This document shows positions 3,189-46,787 of a DNA stretch of 64,000 nt, piece after piece. A model generated the notes under the pieces. It did no database searches. It saw nothing but the letters and a program-made list of their open reading frames with translations, and had not been told where the DNA came from. Every line of letters begins with the position of its first letter. Position 1 is the first letter of the stretch. The stretch is from Styela clava. Lineage: Eukaryota. A program made the position numbers and the translations under genes. Location of the stretch: positions 14,322,001-14,386,000 of the forward strand of contig NC_135252.1 in assembly GCF_964204865.1 (NCBI RefSeq), read 5' to 3'.

Positions 3189-6100
3189 TTATTCAATACT
3201 TTCTCTATTTTTCAGTTTAACATAAACGCCATCCATAGGTCTCAAAACTAAATTCCCGGTTCTTCGTATATCTTCCAATTTGTCACGAGATTCAACGTCA
3301 AACTTCCTTAAAATGTGTGCAAGTACAACTTTTTCTTCCATTAAAGCAAACTTCTGACCAATGCAATTTCTTGGGCCGGCGGAAAATGGAATATAAGAAT
3401 ACGGATGTCGACTTTCAAACTGCTCGGTCTTAAATCTGGATCAAATCTATTAAAAATATTAATTAGTTACATTTTTAAATTCGTATGTACAAAGCCTAAA
3501 AATAAAATGATATTCTTGTTATTCCCATCGAATAAAAATTTTGTTAATGTGTATTTCCCATTTAATCCAAGCTCAAAATAACAAATTTTAAGATTTGTAT
3601 ATGTAAAATAATCTTTTTTTGTTGTACATTGTTAACAATCAATAACAGTGTAAGATAAAAGGCATGGCTGAAATCTTCAACTTGGAATGCCAACAAAATT
3701 AATTCCGATGCTTCAACTGCTTGACTATCGCGCCAATGTATGATAAATAATATTAATAATTAATCCTCACTTTTCTGGATTGGTCCAACATTCCGGATTG
3801 CTGTTGATCAATTGGATGAAGATCATGCAAAAGGTTCCTTTAGGTACGTCATATCCATCAATCCTGAAATACGTTTTGATTATTGAGTGAAGTCTCCTCT
3901 AATACTTAAAATTATAGATATATATCTCTAGAGCAGTGATCTCCAAAGTTGATTTACTGGGGGCCAAAATTAGAAGCGGGAGGATATTCGCGGGCGGGAG
4001 ATAGGAGCGCCCAAGGGGCGGATACCGGCACCGATACATATAATAATAAGAAACCAGTACAATTGAATTGTTACGAATATACACTGCTTAAACTGTAATA
4101 ATGACGTAACAATAGGCATTATTTAGAACTTAAAAAGGTGAAAACAAAAAGTTGAACTCTTCCACTCAAGTTTGGCGGGCCATATTAAATCGTTACGCGG
4201 GCCGTAATTGGCCGCCTGCCGCGATTTCGGAACCACCGCTCTGGAGAAACTTGTGTTTTTTTGTTTCGAGTTTCCGATAAAAATCAATCTGAAACTGAAC
4301 TTCATGAAATTAAAAGACTAGTCAATATTTTTAAACTTTCAACTGCATCAAATATTGTATTTTATATGTAAAACAATTTTCTATTCTATAATTATGGTTA
4401 GTTAATAAAAGATATTTGTTCGAATCGGCGAATAGTTGAAAAAAAAATTGCACAAACACCGAAACTTTTAGTATATTTAGTTGTGACTTATTTTTTAACG
4501 AATATATTTCATCTGATAAATATTGTAGATTGTTTTAAGTGAAACTGTTTTCTGTTGTCTTGTTGAAACAGAAAATTTCGTGGAATATTTTCTTATAGCC
4601 AAGTGATTTAGATATATTTTTGGTTTGTACTGAGGCTGAATTCATAAAACAGATGAAAAGTTTGACACGTTTTTTAAGCTTTAATTTTATTTGTTCAACG
4701 GTCAGTTAGACTAGTGCGCTAGTTCTACGCGCTGTTGGGCATTACTCTAAATTACTTGTCATATATATGATGAATAACATTTTCATGATATTTTCAATAT
4801 CGACATTCATTGTGATACTTACTTGCAATCATGAGCTGTATTTCTACTGACTATTGGGACAGGTGGAAGGAATCGATGAGATTCTTTGATGACCATTTCT
4901 AGATATTGAAGTTTCCGAAGATCTTCAAATGTTATTTTGCGATCAACATCGTCGACAAAAATATTGTCCAATTCCTCTTGAATTCGACGTTGAACATCGG
5001 GATAAGTACCTAATTAATTTAATTTATAAACTACAAATAAAGCATTTCTATTGAAAATTACGAACAGATACGCGTTGTAACTACATATCATTATTATTAT
5101 AATATTATCAATACATTACATATTTCTAAGACGTTTAAAATATAAAAAAAGTATGTTTTAGTATAGCCTACTTTGCACATTCGGAAAATATTATGTTACC
5201 AATAAGATAAAGAGTCCATGTCATTCCTGCAGACGACGTGTCATGACCTATAAATAATGAGAACAAAAATGTGTTTCAAATAAAAAAGAATTTGTATTTT
5301 GTCATATTTCAAATTTTTTTATTAAATAGTTGTATTACGAATGAGAACAATTTTACGAAAAGAAAAGACACGGCAACAAACATGTTTTGTGGGAATGTTA
5401 AATTTGAGGGGTGATCAAGTTAATTTATGATCGGCCGAGTTAATTACATTATATCGCAGCGTAAAACAAGAGGTGCTCAAAAATAGGAACACGATGGCCA
5501 AAACGAAGTAGCATCAAATATTTTACAGTGCCGGTAAGTAGTAGTAGGGTAGTTGAACTATGTATGTCTGAAGAAGTCTGACCTTGGTCAGACGAAACGG
5601 TACAGAAATATATTTGTGTTAGTGTGCAGCAAGACTCTTGAATCACTTAGACTAGTACCGGTAGTCCTCTTTATCAATAAAATTCTGACTTTGCTGACCA
5701 AGAGATCGATGAAATGTTGCCGCAGAACCGCCACAAGACGCGATTTTTATTTTGATGAGGTCATCACAAAACACTTCAATATAAAAAAAAACTTCCACGG
5801 AGCTCACAAAAAAATGAAGGTAATATCCTTCTATAGAGACAACAATAATGTTCAGCCTATAAAAATTTCAAAGCGATTGGCTCAGTAGTTAAAAGAGATC
5901 TTTATCCTAAAAAACAAGAATACGAAGAACATAAACAAATCAACGAAACGATCAATAGTGTCCAATAATTGCAAGCTTTGTTACCTCCAAACATGAATGT
6001 ATCAACTTCCTCTCGAATGTCTTCTATAGAAAGGTGTTTTCCTCCTTCTGAAACTTTTATTAACAGATCTAAGAATGCATGACGTCTATGGTTCCAAGTT

Positions 6101-9100
6101 TCGTCTTCTTTTTTGAATTTCGACATACGATCTCTGATAACTGATTTTGTGAATGTGTGAATAACGTTCAGCACCTTCCTATATTCTTTTCCCATTTTTG
6201 TTAAATTATAAGTTACATCGGGCCACATCCATGGATATTTAAATCGTTTCATTAGCAAATGAGTGATTCTGATTTAAAAATAAAAAAAATTTCAACTGTT
6301 TATCCATGTACATGAAGCACTCACAATTTAAAGCAATTCCTACACTGATTGTTTAAATATGCATGTAACTGCTTTTCGTGTTGTAGTTGAACTATGTATG
6401 TCTGAAGAAGTCTGACCTTGGTCAGACGAAACGTTACATAAAAATATATTTGTGTTAGTGTGCAGCAAGACTCTTGAATCACTTATAATTCGTATGTTTG
6501 TTTTTGTTTAGACACGATTGAGATGCATAGATAAGATACAGAATAAAATTGCAAGACACGGGAAAGATTTGATATAAAATTTGATATCGATTATAATCGA
6601 TAATTGATAATTATCAATTGAATCTATTAAATTTGAGTTGGGTTGCGCGAGACTAACTTCCTATCTTTTCTCTATGCCTTTATGCTAGTGGATCCGTATG
6701 CGTATACTGCAAGGAAGTCTGACTCTAGTCGGACGAAACGTTACAGAAATACATTTGTGTTAGTGTGCAGCTGGACTCTTTAACACTTTCGATGCCAAGA
6801 TCAGTTTTTTCAATTTTACCGTTCCGTGCCAAGGTGAAAACGAGAGAGTTCTCTCCTATTCATTCTCTCTCGTATTTAGTTTTTGATTCATCGGGAAAGG
6901 GGCGAACCCAGCGGTGTCATCAGTTATCGTTCACTCCGACACTTCAGTCGTAGGTGAAAGAACTCACCTACACACGCGTATCTTGTCGGAATTGCTCTCT
7001 CATGCTATTATAACATAAGTTGATGATAACTTGTCTTGATCTCTCATTGCGATAAAGATTCAATTCGAACATTTTATTCAGCAATCAGAATCATTTTATT
7101 ATACGAAAATATCAAATTTGAACAAAAAAAACAAAATCGTTTACTAGCATAAAAATATATCCTTCATTCGCTATATATTCCAATAACATTAATAATGGCC
7201 AATTATTGTCACTCACAAGGATAACATATTGCAAAATAAACAAAGTAGTCACATTGCATATTCATACAACTGTAACACATATGTATCTCTATGACCTCGT
7301 CACCATTACAATACGTCGAAAGTATTGAAATCGGCCTCTTATCTTGCCATAGTAGTGCGAGTAATTGTCCTTTTCGTAGTGAGATGATTTCCCCTTTCTT
7401 TAGTTTTGTTTTTATTTCTGCTGGAAGTCCCTTCCGGTTTGCCATGACTGTTCCCGTTATCGATGTTTTCCTTCGCTGCAATTCCTCGGCTAATGCGACA
7501 GAGTTATAGAGTCTAAATTAAAAATGAATATTATTAAAAATTGGTTGTGATAAAACAGTTTATGCAATTGATTGATATATCCGACAATGATTCGTTATCT
7601 AAAATAGAACGCAGTATGGCGCCGAGACGTAAATTATCTAATTTGTCTTATCAATACCGAATAATCAACATACCTATCAACAAATACGTGATATCCTCTA
7701 TCCAGATGACTTTCCATTAGTTGCAAAACTAAATTCGAAGTTTTTGTGACGCCGGGTGGAAGTTGTTCCAAGTTTGGATTACCATAATCTATTTTTACAT
7801 TGAAAATGTATCCAGTTGTTGAATCACTCGCACTACTATGGCAAGATAAGAGGCCGATTTCAATACTTTCGACGTATTGTAATGGTGACGAGGTCATAGA
7901 GATACATATGTGTTACAGTTGTATGAATATGCAATGTGACTACTTTGTTTATTTTGCAATATGTTATCCTTGTGAGTGACAATAATTGGCCATTATTAAT
8001 GTTATTGGAATATATAGCGAATGGAGGATATATTTTTATGCTAGTAAACGATTTTGTTTTCTTTGCTCGAATTTGATATTTTCGTATAATAAAATGATTC
8101 TGATTGCTGAATAACATGTTCGAATTGAATCTTTATCGCAATGAGAGATCAAGACAAGTTATCTCCAACTTATGTTATAATAGCATGAGAGAGCAATTCC
8201 GACAAGATACGCATGTGTAGGTGAGTTCTTTCACCTACGACTGATGTGTCGGATAATACCGAAACATGCGTAATACATTTCAGGTGCGTTTGTATCTTAG
8301 TATTGCTCCTGAGTTTTCGTCGGGCGCTTCTATATTTGGTGGGTTCAGTCAGTAAACGATGAAATTCGAAGTCTTTACTTGCCTCGGCAAACATTTCATT
8401 CAATCTGGTATTTATAGCGAGCAAATACTTATTTGTGTGGATATTTGAACTAATATTGGCGTGCAAATGAAGTATTTCCAAATGCAATTTCAATATTCAT
8501 TATACGCATCCGGTGTCTCTAAGTTGACATAATAAAAAGGTTTAAAGCTTCATCGAAATTCGTCAGTTGATCTGTCAAGAACACGATTTTCCGAAATTGT
8601 CATCTCACGCAATTTGCTACGCAAGTCGTCTCGACTGCACGTAGTCCCGTCTTCGTGGCGCCAGACACGTGATCGCTATTGCGTAGCTACGTAATCAGTA
8701 CGCCATGGCTGCTTATTGAACTTGTTCATCCGACACAAAGTCGTAGGATTGCATATTTTGCTATAATTATGGTTATACAATAGCTACGGAAGTAATTCAA
8801 TATGAGCTGAAAGCATACGAGGGGCTCTGTGTTATTGGTAATATATTTCCCGCTAAATTACCATATCTCGGATCATATCTCACTGACAAGTAGAAAAATA
8901 TATGTTCCGAATAATATCAATTTCTCACTTTATTATTTCAAAATGTAACATTTCACCTCTCAGGACGATAAAATTTGCTTTCGTTGCAGATGTCCGTCAA
9001 TCCGTTACCCAAAAATGATAAAAAATTAAAAAAACGTTCAAAAATACCAACATTTTGAATCATTTCATCGTCCTGCCAATAAGACGACGATCATGCATAT

Positions 9101-12011
9101 AAAAATATTCGAATTATTTCCCGGTTTAGTAATGTTTTTCTACATCTTCGTAACATGATTGATAATATTATCATCTCTCCTCACACCTTTCAATCATTTC
9201 ACCGTAAAAAGTTGAAACCGTGTGTTGGCGTCAGTCGGTCTCGTACAAATTTTTGATGATAATTTGCGGCTAATATGTACCTCGGCCATGCTAAATAAGT
9301 TGATAATTTACTTCATGGCAGACCCTCCTTCCATCTTGGTATTTCTTGAATGACGCGATTGGCTGACGACGTCATTCTTTCTCCCCAACTTGACAACAAG
9401 AGAGAGAGAGAGAGAGAAGAAAAAATACGGCAAATACCTGAACTCGACCTTCTTCTATCTATTAAACTTTTTCCTTTTCGAATGACGTATATATACGTCA
9501 TTTTGCATTGATGGCACGGAACGGTTGGCGCCAAATGACGTATATATACGTTCTTGGCATCGAAAGTGTTAATTGAATAGAATAGTCATGTTTATTCCAG
9601 CTACAGTATCCTTGCAGTATACGCATACGGATCCACTAGCATAAAGGCATAGAGAAAAGATAGGAAGTTAGTCTCGCGCAACCCAACTCAAATTTATGTT
9701 ATTGTATTCGTGGGACTTCTGTATCCATAATGGATCCTTCTAACTCTGGACTCGACAACAATTGCAAGAAAGAAATATACAAATACCACAAGAAAGAATT
9801 CGATATTTCAAATTCATTTAGCAAATTTATTTCTTGCCATTGTTGTAAACTGCTTGTCTGAGGAAGTCTGACTCTGGTCGGACGAAACGTTACAGAAATA
9901 CATTTGTGTTAGTGTGCAGCTGGACTCTTTAATTGAATAGAATAGTCATGTTTATTCCAGCTACAGTATCCTTGCAGTATACGCATACGGATCCACTAGC
10001 ATAAAGGCATAGAGAAAAGATAGGAAGTTAGTCTCGCGCAACCCAACTCAAATTTATGTTATTGTATTCGTGGGACTTCTGTATCCATAATGGATCCTTC
10101 TAACTCTGGACTCGACAACAATTGCAAGAAAGAAATATACAAATACCACAAGAAAGAATTCGATATTTCAAATTCATTTAGCAAATTTATTTCTTGCCAT
10201 TGTTGTAAACTGCTTGTCTGAGGAAGTCTGACTCTGGTCGGACGAAACGTTACAGAAATACATTTGTGTTAGTGTGCAGCTGGACTCTTTAATTGAATAG
10301 AATAGTCATGTTTATTCCAGCTACAGTATCCTTGCAGTATACGCATACGGATCCACTAGCATAAAGGCATAGAGAAAAGATAGGAAGTTAGTCTCGCGCA
10401 ACCCAACTCAAATTTATGTTATTGTATTCGTGGGACTTCTGTATCCATAATGGATCCTTCTAACTCTGGACTCGACAACAATTGCAAGAAAGAAATATAC
10501 AAATACCACAAGAAAGAATTCGATATTTCAAATTCATTTAGCAAATTTATTTCTTGCCATTGTTGTAAACTGCTTGTCTGAGGAAGTCTGACTCTGGTCG
10601 GACGAAACGTTACAGAAATACATTTGTGTTAGTGTGCAGCTGGACTCTTTAATTGAATAGATGAATCTATTAACCTGTGAATTGACGTAACATATTCTGA
10701 TCCCTCGTCAACTTGAGCATTTACATTTTCTCCCATTGCTGTTTCACATATGATGTCCAAAGCACATAGACCAACATGTTCCAATAGTTCAAAATATTTG
10801 TCCGAATTTGCAAGTTTTTGTAATCTTTCCGTGAATATCTCGCACTTATCATTCATACTTGGCAAAAAATCTTTCAGTATACTAAAAAAAAGCCATATAG
10901 GTAAAGACAGTTCTGAAATTTGATGGCCAGATTTTCTAGTTGATTGACAAGTATATAATGCCCATTCAGTTTGTTGGTAAGACTAAATTTAAATCAAAAT
11001 GTTATTAAGATTATCTGATTGCTTCTTTCTGATACCCAAATATCAATCTTTGTGAAAGAATTATAAAATCAAACTACTGGTAATATTTTTGAAGGAATCA
11101 ATTGCTTTTAATTCTGTAGACATTTATCTGCTGTTATATGCACTTATTAAGATTTTTGTAATTTGATCAACATTTTCCAACGCGACACTGGACAAATTCA
11201 GCGAAATTTATTCTATAGACTACATCTCTAATGGCAAAATTTCAAAAATTATCTGATTGCTTCTTTCTGATACCCAAATATCAATCTTTGTGAAAGAATT
11301 ATAAAATAAAACTACTGGTAATATTTTTGAAGGAATCAATTGCTTTTTATTCTGTAGACATTTATCTGCTGTTATATGCACTTATTAAGATTTTTGTAAT
11401 TTGATCAACATTCTCCAACGCGACACTGGACAAATTCAGCGAAATTTATTCTATAGACTACATCTCTAATGGCAAAATTTCAGGATTGAATTACTTGACA
11501 TTGTTTTATTCCTATAATATTTGATTATATCATAATATTATATATAGCTTGGAAAGTAAACTCAATACTTGAAGTGGAACGCAGGTGTAAGTAATTTTCT
11601 TCTAGATTTCCATTTTTCGCCTGTTGCTGTTAATAATCCAGTTCCAAGCCAGTCATGGAAAAACTTGTAGAAATACGATTTGTCCAAGTGTTCAGAACTT
11701 TTTAAAATCTCTTCTGCTGCTTTTGGACCAGTGATAAACAGAACAGGCATTGGCCCCCACCATATGCATCCTACATTGCTTTTGCAGGGTACTATGTAAT
11801 CATTGATTATCTTTATTCTGCTTGCGTATATATTGTCAGGGTAGAAATTCAAAAGCTTGATGTGTCCGACAGGTGGATACGATGTGGGTGGACCAGGAAT
11901 CTTTGAGTAAATTTTCCATTTTGTTACGAAGTTTTTGAAGAATGAAAAAGTTTTTATTATTAGCCAAGCCAGCACAACCGTAAACACTATTGCAGAAATG
12001 CTAAATGCCAT
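3189..12011 (-). CDS. Cytochrome P450, CYP4 clan (CYP4V-like), 7 coding exons; apparent frameshift in the last exon (null allele, pseudogene or assembly error)
   Basis: Coding exons (minus): 12011-11569, 10881-10675, 6268-5985, 5247-5200, 5009-4823, 3863-3771, 3446-3189, all GT-AG with matching phases. Motifs: N-terminal TM plus PGPP hinge, WLGTGLL..WKSRRKLLTPAFHF, LDIICETAMG, EEVDTFMFGGHDTS (I-helix), KESHR (ExxR), PFSAGPRNCIGQKFA (heme Cys). The summed CDS is 1520 nt, not a multiple of 3; adding 4 nt gives 507 aa. Confidence 0.93.
3934..4238. mobile_element. hAT-type MITE in CYP intron 5
   Basis: Ends cagtgatctccaaa...ttcggaaccaccg, flanked by a near-identical 8-bp duplication ctctagag/ctctggag. 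Confidence 0.65.
5550..5648 (+). ncRNA. Solo/older hammerhead-ribozyme-bearing repeat (copy A, CYP intron 3)
   Basis: tgtatgt-CTGAAGA-a-GTCTGAC-cttg-GTCAGAC-GAAAC-ggt-aca, followed by the same tail (atttgtgttagtgtgcagc) as the 360-bp units. Confidence 0.65.
6385..6484 (+). ncRNA. Solo/older hammerhead-ribozyme-bearing repeat (copy B, CYP intron 2)
   Basis: tatgt-CTGAAGA-a-GTCTGAC-cttg-GTCAGAC-GAAACGTT-acata. Helix I is tatgt/acata and helix II is 7 bp. Confidence 0.72.
6935..8253. repeat. 428-bp inverted repeat (arms 6935-7362 and 7826-8253) inside the piggyBac
   Basis: The arms are near-perfect reverse complements, for example ttgccatagtagtgcgagt vs actcgcactactatggcaa. This explains the mirrored ORFs 7291..7509(+) and 7634..7897(-). 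Confidence 0.93.
7280..7825 (-). pseudogene. piggyBac (DDE_Tnp_1_7 / PGBD-like) transposase fragment, two exons
   Basis: DSTTGYIFNVKIDYG..TSNLVLQLMESHLDRGYHVFVDR | intron 7673-7513 | LYNSVALAEELQRRKTSITGTVMANRKGLP..LKKGE..LLALLWQDKRPISILST matches the piggyBac DNxxxS, GT.R.NR and W.D.K/R.V.LST motifs. Confidence 0.88.
9854..9895 (+). ncRNA. Minimal type I hammerhead ribozyme motif (unit 1)
   Basis: ttgt-CTGAGGA-a-GTCTGAC-tctg-GTCGGAC-GAAACGTT-acag: CUGANGA and GAAA core, 7-bp helix II with one U-G pair, palindromic AACGTT helix III. Confidence 0.75.
10214..10255 (+). ncRNA. Minimal type I hammerhead ribozyme motif (unit 2)
   Basis: Same sequence as the unit 1 motif, 360 bp downstream. Confidence 0.75.
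10574..10615 (+). ncRNA. Minimal type I hammerhead ribozyme motif (unit 3)
   Basis: Same sequence as the unit 1 motif, 720 bp downstream. Confidence 0.75.
11010..11482. repeat. Tandem duplication, 2 x ~238 bp, in CYP intron 1
   Basis: attatctgattgcttctttctgatacccaaatatc...ggcaaaatttca is repeated at ~11010 and ~11248. Confidence 0.93.
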
Positions 12012-14012: not shown

Positions 14013-17000
14013 CTAAAATCTGCAACGCGGTTTGAAAGACAGGCGACCATACATTCGTTTTCTTGCAGACTTTCGCTTTCTATCATTGTAGCGGATTATC
14101 TGCAAACTTGGGAAAGCCATGTTGCTTCTGTACATTTTCAGTAACAAATATGGAGGTTTTGTTTGCTCGTTGGAACTTGTCGTTGTTGTCGAAGCCGGTG
14201 CGATAGACGTAGTTGTAGAAGCCGGTTCGGTAGTCGTAGTTATTGCAGCTTAGAATAGTAAAATATTATCAGATAAAAAACACAAAATTTCATAATAATC
14301 ATGAGTGCATTCACATTAGACACATGTTGATGGCTAATTTAAAAAACCAAAAAAATAAAACTGAATTAAGCATAAAAATCGACTTGAATTCGAATCTAAT
14401 ACGTATTTGTCGACAAATACGAAAGTCCAATTTTGTATATAGAACATATGTTTAATGCTTCGAACCTTCATACTAAAAAAATGAATAAAATTATTCTCCA
14501 AACCAAAATCAACCAAACTAAAAAGTTTGAAATTTTGTAATAAAGACCCATCAGCATAAAACCCTCCAAACAGATACAACTAAAACCTCATCTTGCTATC
14601 ACGTCGCTATGAAACGGGTATTTAGGACGCATCCTTACATTATCACCTGACAGAATGGCAGAGATTAATAAAAATTTCACATATAAATAACTTGTTTCAT
14701 CGCTTCCATAAAGTTTGTTTGATTTTCCGACAGTGGGATTAATGATTTTATTGAAATACCTTCACAAGATATTCCATCTCCTTGAAACCCATCTTTACAA
14801 GCACATGTAAAGCTTCCTTCTGTATTCTCACACTCCGCATTTAAATGACAATTGCCATGTCCCAATGTACATTCATCAATGTCTGTAATGTTAAAATATG
14901 ATAATAAAACATATTCGATTTCTGAAATTTCAAAAGAAAGAAAAAAACTAAAGAGCTGATTGACAAATCATTACCTACGCATAGTTTTCCTTCGCTTGAG
15001 AATCCAGTGCTACAAGTGCATTCGTATGTTCCGTCGAGATTGTTACATTCTCCGTTTGCACATATTCCGGCTGCTGCACATTCATCAATGTCTAAAAATA
15101 ATATTATAGTGCAATTCTAATTGTAGCATAGTATATACGTAAGCACAGAATTTGCAACTTATGATATAAATGTGATAATTGTTATTGGACTTATGAACAG
15201 TATCAATTATGCAGACTTCCGCACCTGTACACGATGTTTTACCATCACCGGTATAGCCGTCCAAGCAGGAACATTCAAAGCCGCCTTCAATATTGATACA
15301 TCCAGCATTATCCATCGCGCAATCATGAGTACCCATGGTGCATTCGTCAACATCTTAAAAAAAGAAAACATCTTCTTGAATTTTCATAAAAATACCGACA
15401 CAATGAGGAGACTGGATTAAGAGTAGGTGTTCCTTGCGGCGCTCATTGCGTGGATATGGTAGAATACAGTTTGGGAAAAGTCCAAACGCTCATAGGCGGT
15501 CGACAGATATGATGCGGGTTATTTTTGTCGCGGCCAAAATTACAGAAATTCGTCCGGTGTAGTAACCCCGATCTATTCAGTTAATGAAGTCGTTCAAATA
15601 ATGATATCAAACACGACAAGCTCTTTTCTAAGCTCTAATTGAATTGGGGTAGCGAGCAATCGATGTTTAACGTGATTAAAGAAACAATCTTTCCTATGTT
15701 TTTCTGCTCTACACATATATATAGTCTGCTGTTACATTTTTTTTCATTGTTGGACGTATATACATTACCTGCGCAGTTTGTTCCATCCAATTCATATCCA
15801 GCTTTACATGTGCATGTATATGACATAAACGTGTTGGTACATACTTCGTTAACTGCGCATACATTTGGATCCTCACATTCATCAATATCTGTATATTTAA
15901 AATGTTTAAATAGTTTATTAGTAATGTGACAATTTTGTGGAATTTCTGCAATACTATTCCACCAGTTTCAAAATGCAAACATGATGAAAAGTTGCGATTC
16001 CTTCTTAATACTGTAAAATATTCAAACGATTTCTAGCAATATTAATATTTGAAAATGGGAATTGGGTAAGAATAAAAGACCGGATTTTAAAGTAAATAAT
16101 CCCATTTAAACAATAAAAATTTTGAAGTACTCTTTACATGAGATTAAATGATAGCTTTAAATAACAGTAATTTATATGTTTATCCGTTCTTCTTTAAGAC
16201 CGAATAGAGAGAACTTACGAATCAATTACATTGCAATACTCAACATACATGGTGTATACTCTGACTTCATACGGATGTCTTCCTTACGAAATTTTAAATA
16301 ACGGTAATATTTCAAATGAGTTTTAGCCCTTTATGTGTCATATAATTAAAAATACACTTCAGGGTCTTTATTGGAATCAAACAGACCGTACGGTCGTGCC
16401 TAATTCTCACCCACCGCAAATTGCGTGACCCCATTGCCTATTAAATGACATTATGTATATAAATATATAAAGTGCCTCAATACAAAATACAATCACTGCC
16501 AGATTGACTGGAAAAAATTCTGAATGATGTGTATTTAATGTATTTTTAATTTGAACCAGAATTATAAAAATATATTGACCAGAAAAAATGTTCGAATCTT
16601 ATGTAACTGTATATAATGTATATATATTGTATACTGTAATGTATAAGTCTATTGTACTTATCTATGTAATTATACTGTTTTTTGTGATGTATTTGGAATG
16701 AAACAACGTTAAAAAACATAAATGAAAACAATACGTGTGAATGTGATTAAATACGGCAGGAAATCTTGGATTATGACGTATATGGGACTCGTATATATTG
16801 TTCCTATATTTGATGATTTTTATGCGATAACAATATTGATAAAACTGAGTCCGAGTTAATGTAGTTCCAAATTACCTTCGCATGTGTCTCCATTGCTTGC
16901 GAATCCATCATTGCAGACGCAAATATAACTGCCTGGATTATTCGAACAAAAACCAACGATAAACCCACTGATAACACGTTTATCACAGCCATCACTTCCA

Positions 17001-34900: not shown

Positions 34901-37900
34901 TTTAAAGTGTAATGCGAGAAAGCATATAAAATATTGAACTCTTGTCAGCTCTTTTGTTTTCAAAAGTACGAGTACACAAATTTTTCGCGAAAAAAATGTC
35001 CACTTTATTGAAAAAACTACAATTTATTACTGATTATTCTGTATATGCTGATTGCGAACCCAATTACAATATAACATTTAACGTTTTGCCCAATGAAAGA
35101 TCTATTCAATGGAAAACATGCAAGTTAAAGTGAAGTATATAAAAAGTCTGATGTCCTAGGCCTCTTTTCCAATAGCGGTGCGTTTTTATTCTACACGTGT
35201 TTCCTAATTGGTATTTTAATTTGTGTAGATAAATTATACGAAAAATCATCATTAATAAACTCACTAGCAAGTTAGCGTCAAAGCAAATTCTTTATAAGAA
35301 TATTCAAACAGCATGCCGCAGGATTCTATATTTTTTATATCACCTCTATATATATTCATTAGTGTCCAAGTCTACTTTCATTTGTATCGAACAATTAATT
35401 GCTTACACTGTTAAGCAATTATAAAATGTATCTTATTTTAGCACTGAGTTTGCGGTGTCCGTTTATTCCCTGTGGAATTGGAAAAAGATGTTTGAATGGG
35501 AAATGCATACGTTAGTATGCATTATATATCTTTAATCTGTAATTATAAACTCCCTAGCAATTTATCGTCAAAGAAAATTCTTTATAAGAATATTCAAACA
35601 GCATGCCGCAAGATTTTATATTTTTTATATCACCTCTATGTATATTCATTAGTATCCAAGTCTACTTTCATTTGTATTGAACAATTAATTGCTTACACTG
35701 TTAAGCAATTATAAAATGTATCTTATTTTAGCACTGAGTTTACGGTGTCCGTTTATTCCCTGTGGAATTGGAAAAAGATGTTCGAATGGGAAATGCATAC
35801 GTTAGTATGCATAATATATCTTTCATTCGTAAATATATATTTGTAATCTTCCAAGGAAAATATTTTCTATTCCACCCAAATTTGACAATATTAGTTCATG
35901 GAAAAAGACAATATGATATTCGTTGAAGTGAGAAAAACTTATTCGCCCAATTACGAGATTTGTCGGAAGAAATCTTGCGTTCAATAACGTTTGCCAAACA
36001 GTTTGTTTGTTTTTGAATGGTATTTTATTGGACACGAAAAGGGAATATTGATAGTTTTTTTAAATTATTGTTGTTTTTGAAGTGATAGTTGTTTTGAAAA
36101 AAAAATTGATTTCCTTCTCAACCAATGTATCAATCGTATCAAGTTTTAGTTTGAGAGGAGATCGCTAAAAAGGCATTACGTTTATTTTTTAATGTCCCAA
36201 GTCCTGTGAAGCCTCTAAATTTCACAAACATTTCGCTGCTTTTTAAAAAAAATTTAAGTCTTAAACGCTTCCATCTTGCTTACCTGTCCATATTTCAGCA
36301 CACGGTGTTGTTATATTTCTTGAGACTTACCGTAAACCGTTACAAGTAGGTGATATTCGTGCTTGTTTATTTGAGCATTGCTCTTTTGTATTCAGATTCT
36401 GACTCGTGTTATATTCACGGATGCAACCCAGGCAAAGTTTGCAAAAACAATGTGTGCGTATGCAGAACTGGATATGACTACAACGGAAGATGTTCTCGTG
36501 AGTGTATATCCCATAATAAAATCACATACTCCAATGTTGTCAAATACACCCAAATTGATTATTAAAATTGAAAAGTGACTAATTCAATTCAAGTTACCAA
36601 AAATGCCCTTTTTCAATTTTCCTTAACTAAATTCTTAACTACTTAAGTAACTTTATTTACTTAATTCCATTGTATCAGATTTAAAGCACGATTCCAAATA
36701 AGTTACAATTGTCAGCTGTAAACCATATAGCACGATTTATTTCATATAGCTTTACCACATGTAACAACAAGATCTTTCATTGTATTTGCATCGAAACTTA
36801 TGTTGCTTAGTAATTTTTGTGTAAGCGAGCTTATTGACGTATATATATATATATATATATATATTCCTCAAGCAGGCTTATGTTGTATGTCAGTAACCCA
36901 ATTAAAGAAAATTGGAAATATCTGAACTATTCATGATATTTCTATAAAGTATTTTCAAATAAAATCCCCATATAATATTCTCACTTAAGTCTTCAGAACC
37001 TCATCTTTATTCCAGGATGCCCAGCTCCGAAAATTCCCAAGCGATGCCCAACGAGTTGCCCGGCGACTTGTAAAAACCCAAAACCTTCATATTGCACAAA
37101 AGAATGTGACCTCAGCAGAAAATGTGTATGTCCTCCCGGTTTGGTACAAATCAGCAAAACTAATGATAAATGCGTTCGACCAAGCAGTTGCAAAAGAAGT
37201 GAGTATAAGTAGTTTCGAAAAATTAATATTGGTTAATGTTTATAATGATATGATCTCAAATTAGTGGAAAATATTAGAAGCATTCAAAATGTATCAGTAT
37301 TCATTGCGAAAGGTTTTTTAGAAGATAATTGCATAATTCACTTAAATATTTTAAGATTGTGGCAACAAAATTTGCCCCGCCGGTTTCAAATGTCTTGCTG
37401 GATTATGTGCACGTCTTGTAGTTTCATTATGTCCATATAGCTGTCCGACAAATAAACACTGCGTTGGTGGACTTTGCGTATGCTTGCCTCCTTACTTCTC
37501 GTATAACGGACGGTGCATAAGTAAGTATTGTTTTGATTTTTGTTATGAGTTTTTTTGACTAGCGCAGCAGCAAACTAGCACACAAAACTGGAAATAGATC
37601 GTATCCTTCCTTTCCTTGAATTTTGAAAGAAGTCTCATTAGTTGTTAGTTCCACAAAAGTAATATGAACCAGTCGCTATATTGTCGTTCATGTAGATTGT
37701 ATAGATCCAAATATTATCACTGACAACGATTTATTTCATAACAACACAATTTGGTGTTATAGTACAATTATTGGAGAAAAAAAGTTCATGTTGAAACCAG
37801 ATAGGCAAATAGTCAAAATATCTGCTCCTGAGAATATAATATAAATAAAATACATCAGAAAAAGACGGTCTATGTAACATAATTTAGTTAAAATGAGGCG

Positions 37901-46372: not shown

Positions 46373-46787
46373 GAAAACGTGAAGATGAATGTCAGCAGAT
46401 CTTTCTGAACTAATTGCAATTATTAATAAAAAAAGAAATATCATATCATGTTTAAATAAACCATAAATTAGCTGAACTTATTTGCTCAAATAAATAATTT
46501 CACAAATTGCAGTATACCAAGACCTTTTGTAAAGTTATGTCATCACATTGTATTTACAGCCGTATACCAACAAAAAAAACTGAAAACGTGAAGATGAATG
46601 TCAGCAGATCTTTCTGAACTAATTGCAATTATTAATAAAAAAAGAAATATCATATCATGTTTAAATAAACCATAAATTAGCTGAACTTATTTGCTCAAAT
46701 AAATAATTTCACAAATTGCAGTATACCAAGACCTTTTGTAAAGTTATGTCATCACATTGTATTTACAGCCGTATACCAACAAAAAAG
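46373..46787. repeat. Tandem duplication, 2 x ~209 bp
   Basis: gaaaacgtgaagatgaatgtcagcagatc...gtataccaacaaaaaa at 46373 and 46582. Confidence 0.93.

Follow-up and report, generated by a model that had tools for sequence, protein, structure and literature searches.

What is a perfect tandem array of units that each carry a hammerhead ribozyme motif, and how did it come to lie in an intron of a P450 gene? The array in question lies in a stretch of 64,000 nucleotides of Styela clava (NCBI RefSeq assembly GCF_964204865.1, contig NC_135252.1, positions 14,322,001 to 14,386,000 of the forward strand), which is referred to as the window and whose own numbering is used throughout. An earlier reading, made from the sequence alone, had proposed a probably undescribed ascidian retrozyme family whose multimeric transcript cleaves itself into 360-nt monomers or circles. 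Here we report that the unit is a deletion derivative of a Penelope-like element (PLE), inserted in the manner of PLEs at one locus. The array is very probably a young, single-locus, head-to-tail multimer of this internally deleted, non-autonomous PLE and its minimal hammerhead. The three identical units may have arisen from a multimeric read-through RNA, from a rolling circle, or by unequal exchange after about 1.2 units had been inserted.

The 360-bp unit is a deletion derivative of a Penelope-like element

Tandem Repeats Finder resolves the locus into a single array with a period of 360 bp, 3.0 copies, 100% matches and no indels, and a direct reading of the sequence agrees: the array is 3.04 units long and the units are mutually identical, within a window sequence devoid of any N. 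Each unit has a GC content of 36.9% and a single hammerhead motif, and the longest ATG-initiated open reading frame (ORF) within the array comprises 43 amino acids. The sequence-only reading of three identical, non-coding units with one hammerhead each is hereby upheld. The right end of the array coincides with unit position 13 and not with the ribozyme site.

The origin of the unit was traced in the window's own 377-Mb genome, to which all genome-wide results refer. One unit as a query returned 2291 first-look candidates, and matches to the full unit (positions 1–360) are present in the window only. Elsewhere in the genome unit 230–360 is either followed directly by unit 1–130 or 1–233, or occurs alone, and these solo pieces have a common long repeat upstream. 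At one locus (L031) an 805-amino-acid ORF with RVT_1 and GIY-YIG domains ends ~300 bp before the 230–360 piece, and the tail is found likewise behind such an ORF at another (L033); the ORF just upstream in L031 identifies unit 230–360, including the ribozyme, as the 3′ tail of an autonomous PLE. In tandem PLE copies (L004–L007 and L033) the tail is succeeded by unit 1–233, which runs on into the PLE body (GAATTC|aacaac) and has the PLE start codon at unit position 162. Both parts of the unit (1–233 and 230–360) are 97–100% identical to these copies. Of the parent PLE, at least six copies in this genome are full-length and intact, with 98–100% protein identity, and there are further PLE lineages at 62–67% identity. 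The 360-bp unit fuses the PLE 5′ untranslated region (UTR) and first 24 codons directly to the final 127 bp of the tail, ~3.3 kb encompassing the reverse transcriptase and GIY-YIG domains having been deleted. A match to both PLE ends and the loss of the ORF between them are what defines a non-autonomous PLE derivative, and the autonomous Penelope element with the same ribozyme, for which the earlier reading had advised a search, is indeed present.

The deletion is confined to this one place. A 30-nt probe across the junction, with up to two mismatches allowed, has three matches in 377 Mb, all of them in the window array (9801|9802, 10161|10162 and 10521|10522), and the 360-bp unit is consequently a one-locus derivative rather than a dispersed family. 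The retrozyme-like layout that had been proposed (non-coding 360-bp tandems of 37% GC, here with a target duplication) stands, whereas the proposed family does not, because the junction occurs only here. Splicing was considered as the origin of the deletion and rejected, since the deleted segment starts with AACAAC and ends with GATTT and not with GT..AG; no microhomology was found at the exact junction. On either side of the junction lie two 21-nt arms that are complementary at 19 of 21 positions and pair in the minimum free energy (MFE) fold, which bears out the imperfect 21-bp stem noticed earlier 5′ of the ribozyme, and the junction would fall in the loop closed by this stem. The same two arms are ~3.3 kb apart in the full-length PLE, one in the 5′ coding region and one in the 3′ UTR. 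The 360-nt monomer RNA is predicted to be not strikingly rod-like; its MFE amounts to −83.1 kcal/mol (z = −1.73), with 4 of 100 shuffles equal or better.

A related derivative is found elsewhere in the genome. At L037 (G000:C1:6693000-6698000) and at least eight other loci we observed a 588-bp head-plus-tail PLE derivative of a sister subfamily, with 93–100% identity, the units of which are often multimeric, both tandem and inverted, and reside at several chromosomal loci. The dispersed retrozyme-like family is this 588-bp derivative rather than the window unit.

The minimal hammerhead and its variants

On the plus strand of each unit (9858–9895, 10218–10255 and 10578–10615) the motif reads CTGAGGA, an additional A, GTCTGAC and GTCGGAC on either side of TCTG, then GAAAC and GTT|ACAG. 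The pattern CTGANGA..GAAACGT has four matches in the window, compared to 0.02 expected from shuffles, which correspond to the three units and a solo copy at 6402; the genome-wide motif count is 1076, as opposed to 8 for a reversed control. The autonomous PLE carries a minimal type I hammerhead at the same position of its tail.

The published features of PLE minimal hammerheads include a helix II of 7–8 bp, an open helix I of 4–5 bp, a conserved G10.1–C11.1 pair, and a palindrome at 15.2–16.2 in place of the helix III loop (Cervera and de la Pena 2014, PMC4209133). The window motif displays five out of five. All three units have the core (CUGAGGA, GAAA and a cleavable GUU triplet); helix II is 7 bp long, one of its pairs being a G.U, and helix I (UUGU/ACAG) is 4 bp long. 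The extra A after CUGANGA (9865), a hallmark of the PLE class, precedes the pair G9866–C9883; of 32 distinct genomic variants, 29 have G-C at this pair and 2 have a compensated A-U. There is no helix III loop, but GAA-ACGU-U with the self-complementary ACGU, and GAAACGU recurs in 34 of 37 motif instances. The location behind an RVT_1 and GIY-YIG ORF in L031 and L033 is likewise that of the class. In the 32 distinct variants, collected from the retrieved loci, pairing is seen in 315 of the 352 helix cells; these counts derive from an anchored parser, since the MAFFT alignment set the loop-length gap inside helix II. By its sequence and predicted structure, the window ribozyme belongs to the published PLE class, in line with the initial assignment as a Penelope-type minimal type I hammerhead in which the palindromic ACGU replaces helix III. 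One of the checks recommended along with that assignment was negative: the Rfam search returned no hammerhead at the gathering threshold, nor any at E ≤ 10 on positions 5000–11500, Hammerhead_1 included. Such a miss is expected, because the motif is without helix III and the curated models need it. The MFE structure of a 60-nt dimer is an extended helix II duplex and uninformative on the hammerhead core.

Two solo copies, at 5568 and 6402, had initially been taken as diverged copies of the unit that keep the core and change helix I while preserving its structure. They are instead 5′-truncated tails of a sister PLE subfamily, and only one of them has an intact hammerhead motif. The 5568 copy reads GAAACGG and is thus missed by the pattern; with G for U16.1 it does not retain the core, since neither the A15.1–U16.1 pair nor the palindromic ACGU is left. 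Only the 6402 copy has the helix I variant uaugu/acaua; in the 5568 copy there is an A.G mismatch at this place. As evidence of covariation the two copies are weak and were rejected, since every change is seen in one copy only and the sister copies are mismatched.

A second minimal-hammerhead family in the genome, termed family e (L041–L048, for example G000:C1:1618645-1618679), has CUGAUGA followed by A and often occurs as inverted pairs. Its helix I is UGCC/GGCA as opposed to UUGU/ACAG, so that all four pairs are changed and all are still paired; pairs 5 and 6 of helix II are compensated, and the unpaired A and the ACGU are the same, with GUC as the cleavage triplet. Covariation is hence found between families within the genome, with the blemish that helix II of family e contains two U.U pairs. 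A covariance model built from family e alone ranks all five sites in the window above any other match in the 64 kb, with rough E-values of 0.002–0.13. Four 10-kb loci with family e copies yielded no tblastn match to the PLE protein.

Anatomy of the insertion and its host gene

The entire insertion (6631–10661) is enclosed by two copies of a 12-bp target site, and its parts are listed in Table 1. The inverted segment at its left adjoins the left target duplication with its 3′ end, the last 3 nt of which are common to both, and overlaps by 4 nt with the first forward unit, a partial one in which the hammerhead is missing the CUGA half. Between this partial unit and the array resides a piggyBac-like element of 2785 bp with a 17-bp terminal inverted repeat (TIR; CACTTTCGATGCCAAGA), TTAA on each side and two fragments of a piggyBac-type transposase (DDE_Tnp_1_7) identified with Pfam (7209–7481 and 7634–7897); the genome contains five more full-length copies of 98–99% identity and many variants. 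The piggyBac-like element came later, into a TTAA at the unit boundary, and split off the first partial unit. Without it, the original insertion comprises an inverted 85-nt piece and 3.2 forward units. PLE insertions are known for 5′ truncation, partial or multiple tandems and adjacent inverted 5′-truncated copies, and non-autonomous PLE derivatives give rise to multicopy head-to-tail insertions (Craig et al. 2021, PMC8557442). The window insertion combines a multiple tandem, an inverted 5′-truncated piece and a target duplication; other genomic copies of the same family (family a) exhibit 5′ truncation, inverted partners, and 3′ ends at unit 125–134 or 11–16.

The host gene is CYP4-like. Its P450 exons, identified with Pfam on the minus strand at 11562–12011, 10629–10865, 5902–6258 and 4819–4971, correspond in this order to profile positions 1–109, 117–182, 188–274 and 310–351, and the array lies in the intron after the second of them. 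Because minus-strand P450 exons flank the array, it is intronic and its ribozyme strand is antisense to the gene, as the sequence-only reading had recognised. On the minus strand the exon end reads CACAG|GTTAAT and the right target duplication covers intron positions +2 to +13. Read in this manner, the PLE would have inserted 13 nt into a CYP4 intron, expanding it from ~385 bp to ~4.4 kb.

Directly before the window (L054, G000:C3:14314000-14322000) there is a tandem CYP4-like paralogue, 79–92% identical to the window gene. It has no PLE insertion, and its empty site is located at C3:14318365-14318396: a probe consisting of the left flank, one 12-mer and the right flank has one genome match, with 2 mismatches, 3.6 kb before the window start, and the window sequence minus the insertion aligns colinearly with the paralogue across the junction. 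The empty site confirms the boundaries of the insertion and the 12-bp duplication. The stretch of the window with the solo tail at 6399–6484 has no alignment to this paralogue.

Table 1 Features of the insertion and of the solo tails in window coordinates
Feature	Position	Strand	Remarks
5′-truncated tail, sister PLE subfamily	5565..5656	+	hammerhead with U16.1 changed to G
5′-truncated tail, same sister subfamily	6399..6484	+	intact hammerhead motif
Left target-site duplication, 12-mer TGAATCTATTAA	6619..6630		direct repeat; single uninterrupted copy in the paralogue
Inverted 5′-truncated PLE segment, unit 41 to ~125	6631..6715	-	100% match to unit 41–128
First, partial forward unit (unit 293–360 + TTAA)	6712..6783	+	71/72 identical to array units
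Nested non-autonomous piggyBac-like element	6784..9568		TTAA at unit boundary; 17-bp TIR
Three full 360-bp units + 13 bp	9569..10661	+	PLE 5′UTR/24 codons (unit 1–233) + PLE 3′ tail (unit 234–360)
19/21-bp stem around deletion junction	9756..9845	+	arms 9756–9776 and 9825–9845; recurs at +360 and +720
Minimal hammerhead, unit 1	9854..9895	+	predicted cleavage after U9891; helix I 9854–9857/9892–9895, CUGAGGA 9858–9864, unpaired A 9865, helix II 9866–9872/9877–9883, GAAAC 9884–9888
Minimal hammerhead, unit 2	10214..10255	+	identical to unit 1; predicted cleavage after 10251
Minimal hammerhead, unit 3	10574..10615	+	identical to unit 1; predicted cleavage after 10611
Right target-site duplication, 12-mer TGAATCTATTAA	10662..10673		direct repeat; empty site in the paralogue

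The piggyBac-like element itself is young and holds an internal 432-bp inverted repeat (6935–7366 / 7822–8253). The palindromic AATGACGTATATATACGT occurs twice in window 9481–9551, 53 bp apart, as a 22-bp inverted repeat that is subterminal in this element; weak, chance-level matches to miRNA models in Rfam coincide with these repeats. Elsewhere in the window, two-copy tandem duplications are located at 11010–11482, 35255–35837 and 46373–46786, with periods of 238, 290 and 209 bp and 94–100% identity, and several short minus-strand ORFs (14677–15826) show EGF-like cysteine patterns such as CxCxxGYxGDG and are probably exons of a multi-EGF gene.

Origin of the array and its place among known systems

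The 5′ ends of family-a copies may hold a footprint of cleavage. The copies were searched for a break directly 5′ of a fixed 23-nt anchor, and unrelated or inverted upstream sequence was encountered in ~10 copies at unit 323|324, the predicted scissile bond, compared to 3–5 copies at 315|316 and 1 copy each at 329|330 and 337|338, which served as controls. The excess has a binomial P of ~0.001–0.004, allowing for differing detection fractions. It would be expected if some template RNAs began at the 5′-OH product end of the ribozyme, and is suggestive only. A second hot spot of 5′ truncation at unit 270–276, the 3′ edge of the second stem arm, would fit a reverse transcriptase that stalls at the stem in the RNA and suggests long-range 5′–3′ pairing in the PLE RNA. 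The excess of 5′ ends at the scissile bond, without matching 3′ ends, hints at the use of the ribozyme: in vivo the PLE hammerhead may shorten the template for retrotransposition at its 5′ end, with the 3′ hammerhead staying uncut, which bears on the still-open question of what PLE ribozymes are for.

In the most probable course of events, the PLE reverse transcriptase and endonuclease would have acted in trans to copy RNA transcribed from the deleted element in multimeric (or circular) form, and a twin-priming-like inversion would have taken place at the 5′ end of the insertion. Given transcription of the plus strand, hammerheads spaced 360 nt apart could pair via their ACGU palindromes into double hammerheads, and self-cleavage into 360-nt monomers by this route is plausible by analogy and finds support in the footprint at the copy 5′ ends; dimeric action of PLE minimal hammerheads is attributed to Lunse et al. 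2017 in PMC6765202. A number of observations weigh against this account. The breakpoint counts are small and were sorted by eye, and no family-a copy ends at unit 323, the cleavage site. The 3′ ends lie 50 or ~165 nt downstream of it, so that the retrotransposition templates must have held an uncut 3′ hammerhead. Even in dimeric form, PLE minimal hammerheads show poor cleavage in vitro (PMC4209133). Lastly, no other copy of the junction was found and no master for a multimeric template is known, which counts against a multimeric or circular template that existed beforehand.

In a stepwise origin, one deleted copy with a partial upstream unit (~1.2 units) would have been inserted and then have grown to 3.2 units by unequal crossing-over or replication slippage, with the ribozyme as a passenger of no consequence at this locus. 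A single deletion event would suffice for it, in keeping with the unique junction; a partial tandem of ~1.2 units is a standard product of PLE insertion (PMC8557442) that would place 81-bp and then 360-bp direct repeats side by side and so favour unequal exchange, and neither the target duplication nor the inverted piece is at odds with it. Yet two more rare events would have to follow within a short time, given that the units are still 100% identical, and the multimeric 588-bp units at no fewer than eight loci favour multimers made at insertion; we regard the stepwise origin as a genuine but minority possibility. That the units are identical down to the same deletion junction would also be explained by a true retrozyme, the 360-nt RNA of which was excised by the hammerheads, circularised and reverse-transcribed as a rolling circle, marking the start of a propagating family. 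The end of the array at unit 13 is as expected if priming could occur anywhere on a circle, size, GC content and non-coding nature fit the published non-LTR retrozymes (PMC7229834), and the related 588-bp unit is dispersed at eight loci or more and often multimeric. The same 3′ end (unit 11–16) is, however, found in ordinary linear PLE copies, a junction at one locus speaks of no propagation, and a circle would need an earlier molecule with the deletion between two hammerheads, of which none was found in the genome; nor is the deletion a splice, as it is not bounded by GT..AG. Overall this origin is unlikely. Its narrower form, the birth of a retrozyme at copy number one, in which the RNA of the deleted PLE cut itself, circularised and was rolling-circle copied into three units in a single event, is if anything a little harder to credit, and would, if true, provide an example at base-pair resolution of non-LTR retrozymes arising from PLEs.

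A different objection concerns the ribozyme rather than the array: the motif may be kept for another role, such as recognition by the PLE reverse transcriptase, and not cut RNA in vivo at all. The very low in vitro activity of the PLE class (PMC4209133), the successful proliferation of PLE clades without hammerheads (PMC8557442) and the want of genomic copies that end at the cleavage site all agree with this, but it leaves unexplained why all catalytic core positions are kept in >1000 copies and across two families that differ in their helices, and why copy 5′ ends are enriched exactly at the scissile bond and not at the base of a hairpin. On balance we consider it rather doubtful. By far the least probable is a single unit mis-expanded to three by the assembler; perfect identity of the units invites the suspicion, and PLE structures do trouble assemblies (Craig et al., PMC8557442), but the array is a mere 1.1 kb inside a 25.6-Mb contig and its boundaries are distinct and sensible (target duplication, inverted piece and nested element).

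A head-to-tail multimer of a deleted PLE, inserted as PLEs are, can be compared with four kinds of known systems. The PLE minimal hammerheads are the closest, with which the window motif shares the type I topology, the CUGANGA and GAAA core, a 7-bp helix II, a 4-bp open helix I, the ACGU palindrome for the helix III loop, a place in the 3′ tail (pseudo-LTR) of the PLE and a copy number in the thousands per genome. Nothing structural sets it apart; the window triplet is GUU, that of family e is GUC, and no Rfam model detects the motif. Newt satellite 2 and Schistosoma Sm-alpha are likewise short tandem or dispersed repeats, and their type I hammerheads, in which helix III is weak, work as double hammerheads within multimeric transcripts; they differ in being high-copy families with canonical loops in helices I and II. 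No sequence similarity to them was found, the Rfam Hammerhead_1 model having no match to the window motif.

The MRC1 and Chlamys derivatives (PMC8557442) resemble the window element in that they are internally deleted, have a 3′ end in common with an autonomous PLE, and form head-to-tail multimers with pseudo-LTRs and inverted 5′-truncated partners. Chlamys and Naiad are, however, without canonical hammerheads, whereas the window unit stems from a canonical PLE with a C-terminal endonuclease and a hammerhead. Metazoan non-LTR retrozymes are AT-rich, non-coding tandem units of 150–450 bp with a type I hammerhead (Cervera and de la Pena 2020, PMC7229834), a layout to which 360 bp, 36.9% GC and a type I hammerhead per unit conform; the target duplication and the co-occurrence with, and sequence kinship to, PLE pseudo-LTRs are further similarities. 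The published retrozymes mostly have canonical hammerheads with loop–loop contacts, are multi-locus and have demonstrated circular RNAs, whereas the window unit has the minimal PLE hammerhead and resides at one locus (all three matches of the junction probe fall in one array). It has kept the PLE start codon, and its parent PLE and exact deletion breakpoints can be identified. Furthermore, the retrozymes described by Li, Clavereau and Pollet (2026, 10.64898/2026.07.22.740005) are depleted from introns, while the window unit is intronic.

The classification remains unchanged. Ribozyme, class of element and tandem arrangement all have precedents in the literature, and the window element clearly exemplifies a type already known rather than a new class. 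Retrozymes have been proposed to be non-autonomous PLE derivatives (Li, Clavereau and Pollet 2026, 10.64898/2026.07.22.740005), and the window locus fits this proposal for animal retrozymes and illustrates it at base-pair resolution. Derivative and parent PLE are found in one genome at 97–100% identity, and the readable breakpoints, target duplication, empty site and inversion junction make the locus a clean case study in the formation of such arrays.

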